64,000 nt of DNA from Auanema rhodensis (Eukaryota; Animalia; Nematoda). A program made the position numbers and the translations under genes. This document shows, one piece after another, positions 12,853 to 29,132 of the stretch. The stretch spans positions 6,448,001 to 6,512,000 of the forward strand of contig OZ059896.1 of assembly GCA_964057225.1 (NCBI GenBank), given 5' to 3'. Every line of letters begins with the position of its first letter. The stretch's first letter is position 1. Below the pieces are notes generated by a model. It made no database searches, was not told where the DNA came from, and worked only from the letters and a program-made list of their open reading frames with translations.

Positions 12853-13588
12853 ACTCGAGGGATAGGATCAGCAAAACAAGTTTGATAAAAAATTAAAGCG
12901 AATCTGAAAAGAAAATACATTATAAAAGTAGAAAAAATGATCAATTTCTTCAAATTCAGTAGCCATGATATAACAAATATATATATATATATAGAAAGAG
13001 AGAGTTTAGATTAAAAATAATAATTAGTATATTGATATAATCACAATGAAGAAATTTATAATATCGATTAAAATCTATATGAACTTTGATAATATATTTA
13101 AAATTTTTAAATAATAATTTATAACTATTTAAGAGATTTATATAAGGCTACTTATCTTTAAAAGTTATATATTTATATATCTATATGCTTTAGTACACGT
13201 ATGTGTTTGCCGTATATTGCATAGTTGCTTGTAAATGTAGTACGCAATGTGCATCATCAAAGAGCTCGTGCATTCCATAAATAAGTATTGTCTATGGCTG
13301 CATTTTTATTTTATTAAATATTGCTTGAAATCATCATCATGTTATATCTGTATTGATAACATTTATCGATTCTAAATGAGCCAATATATATGTTATGTGT
13401 GATTTTTACACGACAGATCAATAGAGACTTTGATTTCACATGACTTTTATATAGTCATTCTAGTCCATTCTTCTTGTTTCTATCATTTAAGTAGAACTTT
13501 TTCTCATTTACGTTAAACTTATTATGGCTTATTTAATTTTCTAAAAAATAATAATATTATTTCAGGTGATGGTTAATACGAACTAAAA

Positions 13589-14267
13589 ATGGTGTATATT
13601 GATTCTAGTAAGTGTTTATATAATTTTAATCTTTATTTAATTATTCACTGATATCTATCCTTCTTAAATACTAATTAATATATATTTTGTAGTTCAATTT
13701 ATAATTTTTTAGAAGGAAACGTTCTTGAGAAGAAGGCGTCTATCTTCGCCTGCATTACTTCTTTTTTCGGCGTTTTCATTGCTTTGTAATTTTTTAATTT
13801 AATTACCGAAAATTAATGAGCTTACTATAGCTTCCTGTCTCTGTTTGGGTTGGACCGAAGCAATTCAACGCCTAACTCATATCGAGATCAACTTCGTAAC
13901 GGTGATGGTGGGACTTGGCCTGGAAGCGGGGGCCCTGGAGGACCTGGTCGCCGGGGAGATGGCAAGTTATTATCATTCTGCAATGCTTTTGGTTACTTGA
14001 AATAACAGCGTACTTTCTTAAAATGATTTCAACAGCCCTGCCGCCTAGACCTGCTTAAAGAATGTTTAAATTATCTACTTTTTCTTCTTCCAGGTCTACG
14101 TCGTCCAATAGGACGGCTTCCTAATAGTAGTGGAATGTCTTGTCCCCCAATGGCTGGGGGAGGATGAGGAAGGTTAGCTTTTTTTGTAAATCTTTTCATG
14201 CTATTATTCGTTTTTTTTTTCGAAAACGAGAATTATTTACAATTTAGTAACGTTTTCTTTTAGGTAA
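13589..14267 (+). CDS. SELENOK: Selenoprotein K (SELENOK/SelK), 101 aa, Sec encoded by TGA at 14165-14167
   Basis: Exons 13589-13607, 13713-13785, 13831-13961 (GC donor), 14094-14172 and 14264-14267 total 306 nt. Protein: MVYIDSKGNVLEKKASIFACITSFFGVFIAFFLSLFGLDRSNSTPNSYRDQLRNGDGGTWPGSGGPGGPGRRGDGLRRPIGRLPNSSGMSCPPMAGGG-U-GR*. It matches the SelK pattern: MVYI..G.VL start, one TM segment, Gly/Pro/Arg-rich tail, PPMAGG-U-GR end. A SECIS lies downstream. Confidence 0.93.
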
Positions 14268-14269
14268 AT

Positions 14270-14288
14270 GTCTGGGTCGCGCCCAGAC
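14270..14288 (+). promoter_or_regulatory. Proximal stem-loop immediately after the SelK stop (candidate UGA-recoding element)
   Basis: GTCTGGG-TCGCG-CCCAGAC forms a 7-bp GC-rich stem in otherwise AT-rich UTR, 11 nt after the UGA in the spliced mRNA. Confidence 0.6.
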
Positions 14289-14409
14289 TGCCTTCACTAA
14301 CAGGAACTCATACATATTAATCGCCCTTAATTTCCGTTTTTTCTGTTTAATCTAAATTATTTAATTACTTTTACCCCTGTACTTTTTCTTTTGTATGATT
14401 CCTGTTATG

Positions 14410-14520
14410 TTCTCATGAAGCCTATCAAGGGTAGGCGTGGCTTTGTGATGCGTACTCGCCAAATCCCATAGAGGAAGCGACTCGTTGATGTACATAGCAT
14501 ACCTTCGATAGCCATGGGAG
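14410..14520 (+). promoter_or_regulatory. SECIS element, form II, GUGA variant, with extended helix I
   Basis: GTGAT at 14445-14449 faces TGAT at 14486-14489 (tandem G.A quartet). Helix II is GCGTACTCGC/GCGACTCGT. Unpaired AAA at 14461-14463 follows the GA after a 12-nt spacer. Apical mini-stem TCC/GGA. Helix I pairs 14422-14439 with 14493-14511 and 14410-14417 with 14513-14520. Confidence 0.85.
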
Positions 14521-17500
14521 CTTCAGCTTCGGCTGCCAATCGAAATACCTTAGCGGGTTTTGTTGGTAATGAAAAACAACCTAAGATTCTTGTCCTCGGT
14601 ACGTTATATCTATTATGTCGTGTTTCATTCATTGTATCTTAAACAAATTATTGATATGTTAACGAGAGATGTTCAAGAAAATATCAATATGATTTATAGT
14701 AAAATGCCTTTCTTGCTGATATTGGTTCTATATTTTTTAATTAGTTGAAAATAAATCCATCTTCAATTGGATAAAGTTGTATAGAATTTTCTCGTTGGCT
14801 GGCTTTGAACATTTTCAATAAATTATAGCTACACTTCTTCAAGATAAATCTTTTCTTTGATAACTAATTACAGATTTCTCAGCAGCGAGAGTAGTAATTA
14901 TAAAAATCACGCGATTTTAACGATAATCTCTTTTATTAATTTTGAATATTTAGGTTGCATGGGCTCGGGAAAGACGTTGTTATGTCGTCAATTAATGTAT
15001 GTTTAAGGCTATATGATATAAGGCCTAATATAATTTTTTAAAATTTAAAATAAAATATTTTGAATAGGTGGAGGAAGTTTCCATTTATTATAATTATTAA
15101 AAAAAAGAAAGTAGATGATTTAAAAAAGAAAACAAAAGTTGAATCTTATTTCATAGAAAACTCATCGTTTTCTTTATTGTTACTTCTTAAAATTCCATTG
15201 TGTTTTGCTTTCTAAAGAATAAAATTTTTACTATAACAACTGAAAAAAAGTGGTTTTGAAAAATGGACAAATGTTTTACTTATGTAGTAATTATATGATA
15301 AATGTTTTTTCCGCAAAAAATAAAGTAATCTTTTTGTAATTTAGTAATTATTTTTTTTAGATAAAATAAATACCAATACTTGTCAAAAACTGAGTATTTC
15401 TCATACGGATTCTGATTAGGAAGATCCTTTAAAATTATGTAATAGATCAAAAACAAAATTATCAAAAAACAAAATAAATCTTAACATAACAGGAAATTTA
15501 TGAATTTTTTTTTATTATATGATTTAGCTTACATAAACAAAATATTATATTTATGTATTATGTATAGAGTTAAATAGTATCAAAATATTATTTATTTTTA
15601 TATGTTTTAAATATTAGATTATCAATTTCTTTAATAAATTTTAAAACAAAAAGATATTTAAACAGATCAAATGGCCTTTTTTATAATTTTACACCTCATT
15701 GTATAAATATGTAATTCATCACCTCGATGATTTTTAGTTCGTTTGTCTAATGTTTTGAATTGTATAATCTTTTGATTTTCTAACTATAATAACACTAAAA
15801 CAACATTGAAATTCTTAAGAAACAGAAAACATATAATGCATTTTAATTATTTAATTATTTAGGAGATATTCCCGAACTCAGACACCTGTTATTTCTTATT
15901 ATATACACACAGTGCAACATCACATCTTAGTCATTTATAGAGCTTTGGAAGATGTTTGTAAGCAACTCGAAGTTGATTATTCCAAGCGTAAAGTAAGCAA
16001 ATTACTTTGAAACTTAATTAATCACATCACTTTAGGAAGAATTTGATATAATAAATGATTTCCGACATAAGGAAACATTAAAAGAAAGCGTTGTTGAATC
16101 TCTTTTGAAGATTGCTTCATCAGGGCTTTACGAAGAATGTCAGACAAAGTCTCGTCGGTTGAAACTGCCTTATAACTATTCATAGTGAGTCTCTCGTTTG
16201 GTGTTAATTTTCTGTTTTTCCTCACTTTTCATTGAGTTTTCCAATTGGGTAAGCATATCTATATTTGTATGTTTACAAACTATTTTTTTATTTAGTTTAT
16301 AAACACTGATAAACAATAAAATAAAAACAAAATGAGTTGAAGCAATCATTATCAATTATTTGTTCGAAGTAACTTAAAGATAAAAAGATGATATTTCTGT
16401 TGCCATGGTAAGATAATCATAACATTGTTCAATGCAAAAGATGAAAAAAAAAGATGAAAAGAGTCATATCGTTAAGACAATCTGCCAAAAATTATTTTTT
16501 TTGAGTAAGCGAAGCTTGAAAAAACTGTCAGCACTTTGAATGTGGTTCCAAATCTTGATCTTTGTTTCTTCATGACGCAACAAATGTCAATTAATTTACT
16601 TTGTGCTGTTGTTAATACTAAATTAAAAGAAGATTTCAGTTTATTTTAAAAAGTACTGTATCTTTAAAGAAATCTTTCTTATGAAATCTCAACAAAAGGT
16701 TTATAGCTCAAAGATTTTCGTATTCAAAGAGAAACTTAAATGCCATAATTTGGTTTCAATGTTAGCGCCGTGAATATTTGATACAACTTAATCTATTCAT
16801 ATGAGATTATTTAAGATATCTCAGTATATTTCATGACATTATAATTTCTTCATATTTATGTGCTTTTATATATTTCAATATATCTCTTAATTATGTTTAT
16901 TCAGCTTCATTTCTTCATTGAAACGGATTTTGGATGAGAAATATATTCCAACCGAGAGTGATATTATCAACTCATATGCTCCAACTATAGGAATATCTGA
17001 TTATCCTATTCGTGTTGGTTCCGCACGCTTTCAGTAGGAATAGATTATTATGATCTGAAATCGTTTTTTTTTTTCAGTCTAGTAGAGTTACCAGGGCATC
17101 ATGTTTTTCGAAGACGTTGGCACGATTTTTTTAAATACACTATGGCTGTTTTCTTTTTAGTTGATTTAAGTGAACTTTGTGAACCTGAATTTTACAAGGT
17201 ATTATCTTGATTGGTATAAACTTTACATAATGATTTACAGGGATATTTGAAAGGGAAAACTCTACAAATATTTAAAGATTTACTGCCTAGTCCGTTACTA
17301 CGAAACGCTGGACTAATTGTTCTGTTTAACAAGAAAGATAGATTTCAAGAGTTGTCAATCAATGTTAATTGGTCAAACTTGGCTCAACACGTAAGAATAT
17401 TGTTTTTCTTCCTTTAAATCCTCAACAAACATCATTTTAGGTTCGTTCAAGTAACGAAGCTTTGTCATTCTATCGATCACAATTTGTAACATTACTTCCA

Positions 17501-17617
17501 AAAGGAAGAAGTTATCATCATTTGGTTAGCATGATTTCATCAAAAAGTTCGGGAGTACTGACTGAATCATTGTCAGCGATTATTAAGCATAATAAAGAAA
17601 ATATGAAGCCATTGTGA
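14514..17617 (+). CDS. Divergent heterotrimeric G-protein alpha subunit, 8 exons, 327 aa
   Basis: Exons 14514-14598, 14954-14996, 15863-15992, 16036-16184, 16905-17033, 17078-17198, 17241-17390 and 17441-17617 total 984 nt and are open. Motifs: MGASAS myristoylation consensus; KILVLGCMGSGKTLLCRQL P-loop; helical domain; YIPTESDII..T.GI; FRRRW..FF; FLVDLSE; LFNKKD. Confidence 0.85.
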
Positions 17618-18246
17618 ATTATATAAGTATATTTTTAGAAAATCATTGTATAGTATGTATAACTAATAAGCATATATTCAAAATTATTATAAATCATTAT
17701 CACTATAATATGTATTCATTGTTAAGCTTTTGATAATAAATGAGCTGAACATTAGATATTGAGATGAAAATCTGTTAAAAGATTGAAAATCAATCCCAAT
17801 TTAAACAATATGGAAGAAAAATGTCTTGAAGGCAATGTCTCTTATTTATATTTTTATAAACTATAGATTATATGAAATGGAAACTAATATATATATATTG
17901 ATGATAGAACAAAGAACATCAACTAATTGCACTAAACATTAGTAAACATCTTTCAACAAAATAAAATACATTATTTATTTTCTCACTATTCCTACTTCTA
18001 AACTATTAGAATTTCCAAATATTGTTCACCAACTTAAATAAGTGTTTTGACATAAGGGCATGGTTAGGTCAATCTGACCAAAGCACCTAGAAGCTTGGTC
18101 ATATAGAACGATAACCCTCACCAAAGGTCACATTAATATCTAACAGACGAATCTAATAATTTCATAGTTATTGTATATAATTTATATATAATTAAAGCAA
18201 ATTTTCATTCTTATCTTTATTCACTTCATTTAAAAAAAGAAGATAT

Positions 18247-18760
18247 GGCTCTTTTCTGTTATTTCCCCCCCCTTGCTAGGCTCCGCCTCTTCTGCCGAAA
18301 CGCGCGCAGTTTTACAACCTGGGGATGAGACTCTGAACCACCCTATAGACTCTAAACCACCTTCACGCACAACTTCCGAACTCCGGGGGTCTGGGGGGTA
18401 TCCCCCCAGTGGGGAGAAGTTATTTTAATAAAAATTATTAACCTATAAATCAGCTTTATTCTCTCTCCCTCGCATAAAAAGTACAATATCTTCAAAAATG
18501 GTATCAAATAGTCTTTTTTGATTGTTCCGTCTTCTCCACACAAAAACTTTTATAACCCTTTTAAAACATGTTAACTTTGTACTTCTTTCAATTGGGGTTA
18601 AACTTCTCCCCACTGGGGGGATACCCCCCAGACCCCCGGAGTTTGGAAGTTGTGCGTGAAGATGGTTTAGAGTCTATTCCGTCCCCAGGTTGTAAAACTG
18701 CGCGCGTTTCGGCAGAAGGGGCGGAGCCTACCGAGGGGGGGGAAATAACAGAAAAGAACC
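18247..18760. mobile_element. Non-autonomous DNA transposon (MITE), 514 bp, ~160-175-bp TIRs, 8-bp TSD; Merlin-like end structure
   Basis: 18247-18421 is a near-perfect inverted copy of 18600-18760. Termini are GG...CC. The direct repeat GAAGATAT flanks both sides (18239-18246 and 18761-18768). The AT-rich spacer has no transposase. Confidence 0.88.
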
Positions 18761-20399
18761 GAAGATATTATTTGATAATCAGTTTTGTATTTAGGATACA
18801 AAATGATATCAGCTTGATATATATATATAATATTTGCAATTTCTGCAGATCACATACATATATATCTTAATACTTTTTCATACAATATATCTTATTCTTT
18901 AATTTTCTATGCAATTTTTTTCGAATTAAACAGCTGTTAACTCATTATACGATAAATTAAGCTATCAATTCTAAGGTCGATTAAAGAACACTTGATACTC
19001 AGTCTATCTTTCCAAGCTGCTAACCGATTCTTTTTTTTTCTTCTCCTATTTTCCACCTGCTTCTTCCAGGATTCATTGTTCTATTCGACTTTTCTATTCC
19101 CTTACATTAAAATGCCGACCCCATCCATCCCTCAGACATTCGCTATTTGTTGGGCGGTACAAAGTGACCTTTGTCCTACAATATCTCTTGTTCTCATATT
19201 TTCTTATACTATTTCAGATATTTCTTCCCAAGATAGAGGTGAGAATGGAATTTTCTACCATCTCTAACATATCTTTTAGTAGCCAAAATACTCACCGCAC
19301 ATATGACTTAATTAACTTTTATGTTGGAGATTTCTATAAGGACCTCTAATGACACATTGTATTGTTTCTTTTACTCAATCTTAAATGAATATCTTATAAG
19401 ATACATCTTTATATAATATTATAAATATGACATCAACTACTCCATTAATCTAATATGCATTATACAATAACGTTATTCATCATCATCTTATTATTTCTAT
19501 ACTATACCATTACTTTCTTCTTCGTTATGTGCATCTATATACATACATATATAAGTTAAGCTTTACAGTTGTCATATCTGATTGGTCATGTTCCAACGTC
19601 AACACCATCGTTAGTTATATTGACTGTACTCTAGAGCTAGATAGTTCTTACTTTGCTGTTGTCTGTTCTATATGGCAGGGTTATGTTTGATCTGTACTTC
19701 TGCTCTCGTAGTGCTCTAGTTATCTCTTGGCAAATAGCCATTAAACCATATTGTACCATACACATCAGGTTTAGCTGAACAGAGGGGAAGGACGCGCAAG
19801 ACGCGTGGCCCATACCAATTTTCTAACATTTCATTTGACTCTATAACTTATTTCTGTTTTATAGTTTAAACTATAAGAAGTCTTTTTCTTTTGTTTTAAA
19901 TTCTCTTACAAATCATGGACTTTTTGCTCAAGAATGATCGTCATTTGGGATTATGTTAGTTTTGCTTTGTTCTTTATTCATTGCGACTCAATCGTCTTTA
20001 ACCTTTTTAATTATAAATACTTTTCTTCGCTATCATCATACTAATTAGGCTCTGGACGATTGCCCTCGTCAATGTTATCATCATCTTCCATATTCGTAAT
20101 TATATGTCCATATTCTCGACCTTGATAACATTTGGCCTGTTGCCCCCGTACCTCTGTTCCCTCGTTTCTTCGTTTCATTCTCTTCTTGTTTCTGTCTCTA
20201 CATCTCTTTCTCTCTATCTATCTTTCTCTTTCGTGTATTTTCCTTACTTCCATCTATATACTAACTCGAACTTTCTGTTGCAATCCTAATCTTTATCTTT
20301 TACATAAGTATACATAAGATAATAACGTTACAGATTCCATATTGATTTTTTTATTTCTTATGGATTTCGGTAATCTTCTTCCCTTAAATCATTTAAGTC

Positions 20400-25600: not shown

Positions 25601-28600
25601 ATATCGCACGGAATATGACCGATACCAATGTAGAAACTTGGCTCTTGCACTCACTCCTCGTGAGCAAATTTCCGAGGTTTCATTCGCATCTTTTTTTCTT
25701 TTTTATTTCTTTTTTTCTAGACTTGCGCTAGATATATTTGTCCTGTAGCTGCTGCCATATTAAACAAGACTTCAGAATGCGATTGTGACCCTACCGGATC
25801 TGTTTCTGGAATATGTAATGTTAAGGGTGGTCAATGTGAATGTAAACCAAATGTTATTGGTAGAAGGTAAGTATCGTTTCTTTTTCAAAGTGTTTATATA
25901 AATCTATAGATGTGATCAATGCGCAGTTGGAACCTACGGTTTTGGTCCACAAGGCTGTGCTGAATGCGCTTGTGACTCTGTTGGATCTTTGAACAATCGT
26001 TGCGATAAACTTAGTGGACAATGTGTTTGCCGTGAGAAGGGAATATATGGAAGACAATGTAATCAATGCCAGCCAGGATTCTGGAGTTTCCCAGATTGCC
26101 GAGTAATTATAATCTAAATACATATATTTTTTAATACGAATCTTAGGTTTGCCAATGTAATGATCATGCCAATATTTGTGATCAAGTTACTGGAGCTTGT
26201 ATCGAATGTCGTGACCTTACTGCTGGGCACTATTGTGACCGCTGCCAAGATGGATACTACGGAGATCCAAGACTTGGCGTTGGACTACCTTGCAAACCTT
26301 GTCCTTGTCCAGGTGGCCCAACTAGTGGATTCCAGCATGCTGATACTTGTTACTTACGTCCTGCAAACAATACCCAAGATGTTGTTTGTAATTGCAAGTA
26401 TGTTTTGTTATGGAGTCCCAACACTAATAATTTGTTTGTAGTGCTGGTTATTCTGGAGAAAGATGTGGAAAATGCGCTACTAACTATTGGGGAAATCCAA
26501 CTGAAGTAGGAGGAACTTGTGAGCGTTGTGATTGTAATGGAAATATTGATATGGTCATCGAAAAAAGTTGTGATGCCGTTACGGGAGAATGCTTGAAATG
26601 CCTTCATAATACTGAAGGAGCTCAATGTGAACATTGTATCGAAGGATTTTTCGGAGATGCTAAAATTCGTAGCTGTCAGCACTGTGTTTGTAACTCCTTG
26701 GGAACTAATTCTTCGATGGGAGCTTGTGATCGCATTACTGGACAGTGTCCATGTTTCCCTAACGTTGTTGGAGGACAGTGTGATCAGTGCGCAGAAAATC
26801 ATTATAATCTTTCAAGTACGCACGTAAGTTTTTCAGATTTGTTCTTCAGTTTTCACTTATATTTGTCTTTTATAGGGATGTTCCGCATGTGACTGCGATC
26901 CTAATGGTGTTATTCCTAAAGGTGATGGTGAAGCAGATCTTCAATGCAATGCTTTCGATGGGCAATGTAAATGCAAACCTGGAAGAGGAGGACGAACATG
27001 CTCAGAATGTGAAGATTATTATTGGGGTGATCCAACAAAGCCTGACGGTTGCAACAGATGTGAATGCAACCCAACTGGTTCGGCTAGCCAGCAATGCCAT
27101 CGAAACAACGGTACCTGTGCTTGTTTACCTGGGTCTGGTGGAGCTCTTTGTGACGAATGTGCCCGTGGGTACACCGGCAGATGGCCTTACTGCCAACCAT
27201 GTGGAGAGTGTTTCCATCAATGGGATGGCATTATTCAAGGACTCAAAGAGCAGGTCACTAATCTTATCGATAGTGCTAATAACATCGAAGATACCGGCGT
27301 TGCTTCCGCATATGATTCTGAGTTTGAGAAGATGGAAGCTACATTGGAAGAAACTAAGAAGAAATTAGCTGACGCTAATATCAGCAAGGAACATATGGAG
27401 CAATTGGAAGAAGAAGTGGGTAGATTGAAAAAGGAAGTTGCTGCTGCGCACAGCCGTTTGGAGGGAATTGAATCCAGAATTTCAAACGCTACCCAAGCTG
27501 TTGACTTCGCTCAGGAAGATCTGAAGAGAATTCAAGAAGATTCTGAAAAGTTGACACAAGCTGCTGACGATCTAAATGAGAAAGCTAACAAAATCAAAGA
27601 AGCAGATGTACAAGGAGCTTATAATATTACAAAAGAATCTTCGACCAAGTCTCTACTAGCTCAACAAAAAACAGATGTAGCTATCAGTAAGCTAGCTGCA
27701 GCAGAAAGTGAAGCCCGTGCTGCTGAAGAGTTGTTAGATAGCAATAAAGATGATTTCGAGAAACAATACTCTGAAAACGAAGCTGCTTTGGTTGATAGTG
27801 AAAAGGCGGTAAGTATTAAGATGTGTTACTATTAATTGAATTTGCTTTTAGCTCCATATGCTCGAAGCTGCCTTGCCTGCCCTTAATGGTGAGGTTTGTG
27901 GTGCTGCTTCTGCTCCTTGTGACTCGTTATGCGGTGGACCTGGATCATGTGGATTCTGTGGTGGAATGACTTGTCCCAAAAAGGATGGTGCAGTGAATAA
28001 AGCAGAACAAGCTAAGAGTTTTGCTTTGGAAGCAGATCATAAGCTCAACCAAAAACAAAAAGAAGCTGAAGACGTTTTGACTTTAGTGCGTGACGTTCAC
28101 CAATGGACTGAAACAGCTAAAAAAGATGCGAACGGAGCTTTAAAAATTGCTAAGGATGCCGCTGACAAAGCGAACGTCACTAGAACTGAGTTAGACGAAA
28201 TCATTGATCAAATGCAAAGCTTCTTGAAATCACCAAGAAGTAGTCCTGAAGAAATCCGAACTCTTTCCGAAGAAGTCCTTGCCATGAAAATTAGCTCTAC
28301 TCCAGAACAAATCGCAGAATTATCTGAAAAAATTCGGGAAGCTTTAGCCAAGATTAATAACATCAAGGATATTCTGGATGAAACTAAAGAGAAAAAGGCT
28401 ATTGCTTCCGATCTTGAATCTCGAGCTCTTGCCGCTAGTGAAAAAGCAGCTGCAATTAAAAATACAACTGACACTGTTAAAGAAGCTCTAGGAATTGCAT
28501 CAGACGCCCAAACTGCTGCATCTGAAGCTATTCTTGCTGCCAATGAAGCTATGAAGGAAGCTAGGGAAGATTTGGAATCTGCCAGAAACGAAACAGTTGC

Positions 28601-29132
28601 CACTGAATTGGCTGCCAAGGCGGCAAATGAATCTCTCTCTGGTTTGGAAGGTGAAATGAAAAAAGTCAAGGTTCAATATCTTCAAATCGCCGATGATGCC
28701 AAGAGTGCTTTTGAATTAGTGGACAAAGCTTTACAAGCTTCTTCAACCGCCGAACAGGGAAATAAGCAGATGACGGTATGAAAATTCGGAAATTTAGTGG
28801 ATTATCATATACTATTTTAGACTGATATCGAAAAAGCTCGCGAATTACTTGAAGAGCGATCTGAAGGAAATGATGGACCCCAGAAAAGAGCTGACGATTT
28901 GAGACAAAGAGCTTCAAAATTGCTTTACAATGCTTTACGTCATAATGAAGATATTAATGGTACCTCTTCAATGAAAAAAAAATGAATTAATCTCTTTTCA
29001 GCTTTAACAAAGGACGCTTCAGATGTTAAACTTGACGATTATCAAAGAGCATTAGATGAATTGACTACTCGGTTGGAGTTGGTTACGAAAGATATTCACA
29101 CTAGAACAGAATTCTACGCACATTGCGACTAA
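22693..29132 (+). CDS. lam-1: Laminin beta chain, more than 20 short introns
   Basis: Signal peptide [17 protein letters not shown]; LN domain ([55 protein letters not shown]); many laminin EGF repeats; LF domain; coiled coil with the [12 protein letters not shown] beta-knob; ends FYAHCD*. Confidence 0.97.

Follow-up and report, generated by a model that had tools for sequence, protein, structure and literature searches.

In the nematode Auanema rhodensis, a gene for the selenocysteine (Sec) form of selenoprotein K (SelK) and a gene identified from its sequence as the ortholog of Caenorhabditis gpa-18, which encodes a G-alpha-like protein, follow each other on the same strand with no intercistronic spacer. 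The selenocysteine insertion sequence (SECIS) in the 3' untranslated region (3'UTR) of SelK ends ~10 bases ahead of the gpa-18 ATG. The pair was analysed in a 64,000-nucleotide (nt) stretch of contig OZ059896.1 (positions 6,448,001 to 6,512,000 of the forward strand), called the window below and numbered from its first letter. Adjacency and SECIS are conserved in Auanema sp. JU1783 and Diploscapter pachys, and in Diploscapter RNA runs from the SelK 3'UTR into gpa-18. It is likely that the two genes share a transcription unit, and we consider it somewhat probable that they represent an ancestral operon-like pair whose spacer has collapsed in this lineage and whose single transcript would give either one product or the other. 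The principal features of the locus are:

13589-14267, forward strand: SelK gene, Sec form, five exons (manual model and translation)
14409-14426, forward strand: extended lower helix of the SECIS, 5' strand (folds with predicted pair probabilities of ~0.9; kept in Auanema sp. JU1783)
14428-14505, forward strand: SECIS proper (constrained fold, core held unpaired)
14507-14521, forward strand: extended lower helix, 3' strand, holding AG 14510-11 and the gpa-18 ATG 14514-16
14514-17617, forward strand: gpa-18 ortholog, G-alpha-like (stop-free segments, tblastn with Auanema and C. auriculariae proteins, colinear Pfam matches)

In the mechanism that we favour, SelK in its Sec form and gpa-18 would be an old, same-strand, co-transcribed pair of the operon kind in rhabditid nematodes, whose spacer would have been lost in the lineage of this genome and Auanema sp. 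JU1783 and kept at a modest length in Diploscapter. The lower helix of the SECIS would reach up to and over the gpa-18 acceptor (AG 14510-11) and AUG (14514). The gpa-18 mRNA would most likely be formed by spliced-leader (SL) trans-splicing between 14511 and 14512, the SECIS being discarded with the outron. A SECIS must stay on the mature selenoprotein mRNA, and because Sec-competent SelK mRNA must keep it, the 3' end of that mRNA would form at or beyond the acceptor. With the SECIS ending at ~14505 and the acceptor at 14510-11, each primary transcript would become either SelK or gpa-18 mRNA, not both, and the lower helix might have a part in setting their ratio.

Such either/or logic is already known from the zero-spacer SL1-type operons of Caenorhabditis, in which, according to PMC9258526, citing Williams et al. 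1999, each pre-mRNA serves one product only. These operons resemble the pair studied here in having same-strand genes without an intercistronic spacer, with the upstream 3' end and downstream trans-splicing at the same place. SelK-gpa-18 differs in having no AAUAAA-type signal before the acceptor; the last ~100 nt are instead taken up by a SECIS, and both the acceptor and the AUG fall within its lower helix. Standard SL2 operons consist of co-directional genes that are transcribed together, and the adjacency kept across genera, the SL2 RNA genes in this genome and the Diploscapter spacer between SECIS and gpa-18 acceptor all recall them. SL2 operons usually leave ~100 nt from the poly(A) site of the first gene to the acceptor of the second; here only ~6 nt separate the end of the SECIS from the AG, and the usual poly(A) signal and spacer do not fit in ahead of the trans-splice site of the next gene. 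What would be new is a zero-spacer nematode operon ending in a SECIS; a literature search found no paper on a SECIS in an operon context.

Conservation and transcripts of the SelK-gpa-18 pair

The same-strand order SelK to gpa-18 was also found in Auanema sp. JU1783 (L018), in which SelK is annotated over 98 amino acids (aa) up to the UGA and is followed by a near-identical SECIS, the same ~10-nt gap and then ccATGGGAGC... of gpa-18. Both Diploscapter pachys copies (L017, L023) hold the adjacency as well, with the SECIS ~245 nt ahead of the gpa-18 ATG. The comparison did not extend to Angiostrongylus (L024), whose gpa-18 is too spread out to show the upstream region. Synteny in relatives, proposed as a check in the initial annotation, is thus present in Auanema sp. 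JU1783 and D. pachys; the species in which it fails are weighed below.

Co-transcription is observed in Diploscapter. A protein search retrieved a 104-aa SelK (P0025) from an ENA assembly, and its source contig (L025, 824 nt) matches D. pachys L017 at 99-100% identity in five blocks that are exactly the SelK exons. The 5' end of the contig, CAAGTTTGAG, is the last 10 nt of SL1, and all four SelK introns are removed; the contig is therefore RNA-derived. From there 449 nt follow the genome without interruption, covering the SECIS, the whole spacer, the ttttgag/ATG acceptor (slashes mark splice junctions) and 74 nt of gpa-18 coding sequence to the contig end. This order, SL1-SelK-SECIS-spacer-gpa-18, lends support to the shared or dicistronic transcript that had been suggested from the A. 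rhodensis sequence. One study contributes four small, transcriptome-sized runs (8-16 Mb of contigs apiece), each of which contains 0.49 of the sampled words of 13580-14610. By arithmetic, a share of ~0.5 is expected for the SelK exons plus 14264 to ~14590 and ~1 for a genomic run, so this figure is a weak hint that fits expression of the SelK-gpa-18 unit and places no RNA end.

The A. rhodensis genome (181 Mb, 112 contigs) contains a tRNA-Sec gene (76 bits, above the Rfam cut-off; G000:C4:14839741-14839826), tandem SL1 RNA genes with the canonical leader GGTTTAATTACCCAAGTTTGAG and SL2 RNA genes above the Rfam cut-off. It therefore belongs to a rhabditid-type nematode with Sec decoding and operon-type trans-splicing. 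About 40 tRNA-like units stand in tandem at a spacing of 168 nt in G000:C8:6567447-6573912 and score ~41 bits (weak) with the tRNA-Sec model.

Existing gene models of the relatives show some peculiarities at this junction. The Diploscapter annotation fuses SelK and gpa-18 into one protein of 414-434 aa (L017 4001-8383). In Auanema sp. JU1783 the TAG inside the SECIS is TAT, and an open reading frame (ORF) therefore extends from the helix's 5' strand across the SECIS and on into gpa-18; an 85-aa gene model has been called on this read-through ORF (L018 4432-4698 and 4468-4942). In Pristionchus fissidentatus the gene upstream of gpa-18 (L020 3299-4474) lies on the opposite strand and belongs to another selenoprotein family, Sep15_SelM, which is probably a coincidence.

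The SelK gene and its SECIS element

The upstream gene is a Sec-type SelK, with these features in addition to the gene as a whole:

13552-13565, forward strand: candidate SelK trans-splice acceptor tattatttcag/G, from the sequence, 23 nt before the SelK ATG
13589-13607, 13713-13785, 13831-13961, 14094-14172 and 14264-14267, forward strand: SelK coding exons
14270-14288, forward strand: 7-bp hairpin GTCTGGG-loop-CCCAGAC, right after the SelK stop

The Sec codon, TGA 14165-14167, occupies the position of the family's ...GG-U-GR, the product ends in ...CPPMAGGG-U-GR, and the stop TAA 14265-67 arises by the last splice (AG/G TAA). Both the Sec UGA and the split stop are also present in SelK of Auanema sp. 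JU1783 and Diploscapter. The C-terminal exon shares 87% identity with the Auanema sp. JU1783 gene annotated Pfam SelK_SelG, and PF10961 (SelK_SelG) was found on the orthologs in Auanema sp. JU1783, Diploscapter and L025, which align with the window exons. The single exons of the window, queried piece by piece, had no Pfam match, and the exon-3 stretch used as a protein query gave no match either. The acceptor at 13552-13565 is a candidate SL1 site by analogy with Diploscapter SelK, which carries the SL1 tail at the equivalent gcag/G.

Two further observations concern the gene itself. Intron 3 requires a GC donor (ATG/GCAAGT, 13962-13967) for the frame, as the GT four bases on would break it; the junction reads RGDG/LRRPIG in the window and RGDG/FRRPIG in Auanema sp. 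JU1783, where the same junction has an ordinary GT donor. Auanema sp. JU1783 also has a second, diverged SelK-like tandem copy (L018 2819-3207) ~1 kb upstream of its Sec-type SelK. The window holds one SelK copy, and the stretch from SECIS to ATG is single-copy in the genome.

The hairpin at 14270-88 starts 11 nt past the Sec UGA in the spliced mRNA. Its stem is unchanged in Auanema sp. JU1783, with substitutions confined to the loop, and by eye its Diploscapter counterpart, GCCAGTGG...CCCTGGC, is still complementary and carries two both-sided changes. The hairpin may possibly be an element akin to the Sec redefinition elements, which Howard et al. reportedly described in 2005 as stem-loops just 3' of Sec UGA codons. 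Like them, it is conserved and begins a short distance (11 nt) after the SelK UGA; unlike them, it lies at or after the stop codon, three codons from the UGA.

The SECIS starts ~160 nt 3' of the SelK stop, in the 3'UTR of a gene with an in-frame Sec UGA, and the arrangement UGA-stop-SECIS is common to the window, Auanema sp. JU1783 and Diploscapter. Its parts and its 5' neighbour are:

14391-14408, forward strand: 18-nt block TTGTATGATTCCTGTTAT, identical in Auanema sp. JU1783, where the UTR just upstream is ~50% identical
14428-39 with 14493-14505, forward strand: SECIS helix I
14445-48 (GUGA) opposite 14487-88 (GA, within UGAU 14486-89), forward strand: SECIS core
14450-59 with 14477-85, forward strand: SECIS helix II, interrupted by a 3x2 internal loop
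14461-63, forward strand: AAA of the SECIS, followed by an apical mini-stem of 3 bp (14464-66 with 14473-75)

The AAA lies 12 nt after the GUGA of the core, within the expected 10-13 nt, and in the constrained fold an internal loop separates helix I from the core. The constrained fold reaches -15.9 kcal/mol, and the free minimum over the same 80 nt is -19.6 kcal/mol with a different fold, in a model that cannot score the non-Watson-Crick quartet. A pairwise alignment with Auanema sp. JU1783 shows two differences in the SECIS, against ~50% identity of the 3'UTR just upstream, and the 5' half of the element with all motifs is kept in Diploscapter pachys. The layout UUGUGA-N12-AAA...UGAUG is identical in the SelK SECIS and in the trxr-1 SECIS of C. 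elegans, which has been used experimentally and whose sequence is printed in PMC4114682 (Taskov et al. 2005); the G ahead of the quartet is called typical of nematodes there. The two elements thus share UUGUGA, the 12 nt, the AAA and the UGAUG on the 3' side. The SelK element differs in its host gene, in the apical mini-stem, which gives it a form-2 look, in a helix II broken by the 3x2 internal loop and in a far longer lower helix. Taken together, these sequence features make 14428-14505 a credible nematode-type (GUGA) SECIS. The Rfam SECIS models gave no match at gathering score or at E <= 10, even for a 101-nt slice, these models being uncalibrated on other nematode GUGA SECIS, and the Diploscapter SECIS is likewise without a Rfam SECIS match.

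Several candidates in this region were rejected. Weak Rfam matches to snoR28, LPR10 and CRISPR-DR47 are attributed to chance. The outer AUGA (14415-18) was ruled out as a SECIS core, having no matching GA or AA geometry. Reading GTTCTCATGAAGCC as X-box-like was ruled out by eye, since the match is poor and not kept in Auanema sp. JU1783. The block TTGTATGATTCCTGTTAT lies directly 5' of the lower helix, and the Diploscapter UTR, which is shorter, lacks it.

The gpa-18 start and the lower helix

The downstream gene and the first poly(A)-like signals around its start are laid out as follows:

14514-14598, 14954-14996 and 15863-15992, forward strand: gpa-18 exons 1-3
14568-14573, forward strand: AATGAA within exon 1 of gpa-18, the first hexamer 3' of the SECIS that resembles a poly(A) signal
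14750-14755, forward strand: AATAAA in gpa-18 intron 1, the first AATAAA after the SelK stop
16036-16185, 16906-17020, 17061-17200, 17235-17396 and 17441-17614, forward strand: further gpa-18 exons near these, with the stop at 17615-17

The start codon was correctly placed in the initial annotation, at ATG 14514-16 downstream of the in-frame TAG 14469-71. The protein opens with MGASAS, an N-myristoylation-type start common to all gpa-18 orthologs. Three exon pieces match PF00503, and the matches are colinear; their scores of 30.3, 17.0 and 22.4 bits all fall short of the cut-off for the whole protein, 48.8. When one gpa-18 exon was searched exhaustively, 14 proteins in total were retrieved, and the best belong to Auanema sp. 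JU1783 (72% identity), Angiostrongylus, Heterorhabditis, Diploscapter, Caenorhabditis and Pristionchus. The nearest proteins are annotated G-alpha/Arf, and the Caenorhabditis cluster includes CBR-GPA-18 and a C. elegans 'G Protein, Alpha subunit'. By these similarities the gene is an ortholog of Caenorhabditis gpa-18. The SelK upstream, its SECIS and the G-alpha gene downstream, all named in the initial annotation, are supported, and the two genes form one tight same-strand unit. GTPase activity of the product appears doubtful because its P-loop reads GCMGSGKT and ELPGH stands at the switch II position (exon 17061-17200), where G-alpha proteins have DVGGQ. ELPGH is common to all gpa-18 orthologs found, and the family probably represents a conserved GTPase-dead or atypical G-alpha-like protein. 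A literature search on gpa-18 found nothing informative.

Only two AG dinucleotides occur in 14489-14513, at 14496 and 14510, as had been noted before; the accompanying view that both are poor acceptors does not hold for 14510-11. Its context, cgatag/CC, fits the local cis acceptors, which are mostly (T)TAG and in one case tactatag/C. An AG is also found 1-3 nt ahead of the gpa-18 ATG in every ortholog read, namely gag/ccATG in Auanema sp. JU1783, gag/ATG in Diploscapter (ttttgag/ATG) and cag/aATG in C. briggsae. The idea that gpa-18 has no usable acceptor before its ATG was therefore mistaken, and the conserved AG fits a trans-splice site directly before the start codon.

A search for 13 AAUAAA-type hexamers found none between the SelK stop and 14567. 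This agrees with the earlier statement that no AATAAA stands between the SelK stop and the SECIS and that the first signals are AATGAA 14568-73 and AATAAA 14750-55. The intronic AATAAA is present in Auanema sp. JU1783 too, in a region where the alignment is weak. AATGAA 14568 was ruled out as a conserved SelK poly(A) signal, Auanema sp. JU1783 having AATGAG at the same codons. From the sequence, three ends of the SelK mRNA are conceivable: 14506-12, where there is no canonical signal; exon 1 of gpa-18 (AATGAA 14568); or intron 1 (AATAAA 14750).

The segment TTCTCATG (14410-17) is complementary to CATGGGAG (14513-20), two G.U pairs included, and the helix is longer than initially claimed: it extends to 14409-17 with 14513-21, and 14420-26 with 14507-12 then stacks onto SECIS helix I. 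When the flanks were shuffled with the SECIS fixed, the helix was more stable than expected for tightly chosen flanks (z = -3.2 to -3.4, p 0.002-0.006) and only marginally so for 30-nt flanks (z = -1.8, p 0.05). The stability of the unconstrained fold of 14395-14535 was no better than that of shuffles (z = -0.54). Folded within 400 nt of sequence, both the acceptor AG and the ATG are predicted to pair with the 5' strand at ~0.9, in the window as in Auanema sp. JU1783. Pairing of the gpa-18 start, though with other partners, is likewise predicted for species without a nearby SECIS; in-silico pairing alone is therefore weak evidence.

Comparison of the two Auanema species bears on whether the helix has been maintained. 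The helix flanks of Auanema sp. JU1783 carry 9 substitutions (7 of them in the 5' strand, the other 2 in the 3' strand ahead of the ATG), and the middle of the helix has diverged. The energy of the lower helix is -32.8 kcal/mol there and -33.8 kcal/mol in the window, against -24.4 +/- 3.7 kcal/mol for equal numbers of random substitutions in the same stretches, 2.6% of which reach the observed value (p = 0.026). One clear both-sided change separates the two species, from A-U in the window to C-G at 14424/14509. The lower helix thus appears to have been retained through substitutions, a suggestive result of a two-species test with boundaries chosen after looking. In Diploscapter the SECIS also has a long two-tier lower stem, in which gpa-18 is not involved.

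Two features lie further along the window. Just downstream of gpa-18, at 18234-18790, the translations of two stretches on opposite strands are similar and Pro/Gly-rich, as would fit an inverted repeat and possibly a small transposon. At 26350-28781, a laminin chain gene is indicated by long ORFs that encode laminin-type EGF repeats and a coiled coil; this gene has no relation to the SelK-gpa-18 pair.

Alternative readings and significance

Several observations weigh against an operon-like pair with a collapsed spacer. In C. briggsae, C. auriculariae and Pristionchus fissidentatus, the 5 kb upstream of gpa-18 contain no SelK. No AAUAAA-like signal is present within 250 nt upstream of the acceptor, unlike in the SL1-type operons that have been described. 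Operons do not typically contain G-alpha genes of restricted expression. The two-species helix test is marginal, with its boundaries set post hoc. The Diploscapter contig L025 belongs to a short-read assembly (~5x) and may join reads of mature SelK mRNA and of pre-mRNA; what it establishes is therefore read-through transcription and not a stable dicistronic mRNA. Exact-ORF look-ups for unspliced read-through returned none on record for window 14514-14639, and the same holds for Auanema L018 4432-4698, 4468-4698 and 4567-4698 and for D. pachys gpa-18 cut from the fusion model.

The two genes could instead be independent and merely overlapping, an explanation to which we give an appreciable but minor chance. 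The gpa-18 gene would then be driven in its own cells by its own promoter inside or upstream of SelK, SelK transcripts would extend as far as a poly(A) site within exon 1 or intron 1 of gpa-18, the closeness of the genes would have no regulatory meaning and the lower helix would serve the SECIS only. The first poly(A)-like hexamers do lie inside gpa-18, gpa-18 is retained in Caenorhabditis and Pristionchus where the adjacency is lost, and the Diploscapter SECIS, whose long lower helix is free of gpa-18, raises the possibility that a long stem is a trait of SelK SECIS elements. Independence is harder to reconcile with an adjacency common to Auanema and Diploscapter and with an RNA contig that spans SelK into gpa-18; moreover, except for the 18-nt element at 14391-14408, no conserved promoter-like block is found between the SelK stop and the SECIS. 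A further possibility is a stable dicistronic mature mRNA, capped with SL1, from which both proteins would be made, gpa-18 through reinitiation or leaky scanning downstream of the SelK ORF. The build of L025 (an SL1 tail, spliced SelK, the SECIS and the gpa-18 start) corresponds exactly to such a message, but the contig may combine reads of mRNA with reads of pre-mRNA and stops within exon 1 of gpa-18, the conserved AG directly ahead of the ATG fits trans-splicing, and ~250 nt of structured RNA before the gpa-18 AUG, with upstream AUGs (e.g., 14415), would hinder reinitiation; we hold this to be very improbable.

The initial annotation had also put forward a selenium-linked switch, in which SECIS folding or SBP2 binding would hide the gpa-18 acceptor and AUG, and selenium status or the load on the Sec machinery would set the ratio of SelK to gpa-18. 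The predicted pairing of the acceptor AG and AUG in both Auanema species, and the helix kept through compensating substitutions, are what such a switch would be built on. Nothing links this pairing to selenium, a step that is pure inference, and gpa-18 starts are predicted to be paired in SECIS-less species too. SBP2 binds the SECIS core and helix II, not the base of helix I. The Diploscapter SECIS lies apart from the gpa-18 start, by ~245 nt, and any coupling through the helix would therefore be lineage-specific. We regard the switch as improbable. A related model makes the lower helix a structural gate on the shared pre-mRNA: closed, or stabilised by the Sec machinery, it would cover the gpa-18 acceptor and AUG in favour of SelK mRNA reaching beyond them, and open it would let trans-splicing yield gpa-18 mRNA with destruction of the SelK 3'UTR. 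This gate is similarly improbable.

A survey of Caenorhabditis found trxr-1 to be the only gene with Sec (PMC4114682). The present analysis documents a SelK of the Sec type, carrying a GUGA SECIS, in rhabditids other than Caenorhabditis, as well as a probable SelK-gpa-18 transcription unit kept across genera. It also documents a case that misleads gene predictors, which produced fused models in Diploscapter and N-terminally extended ones in Auanema. The locus poses the question of how the mRNA of a nematode selenoprotein can end within the start of the gene that follows, and whether RNA structure chooses which mRNA a shared transcript becomes. If the helix did act as a gate, production of a G-alpha-like signalling protein would be coupled to the expression of selenoproteins.

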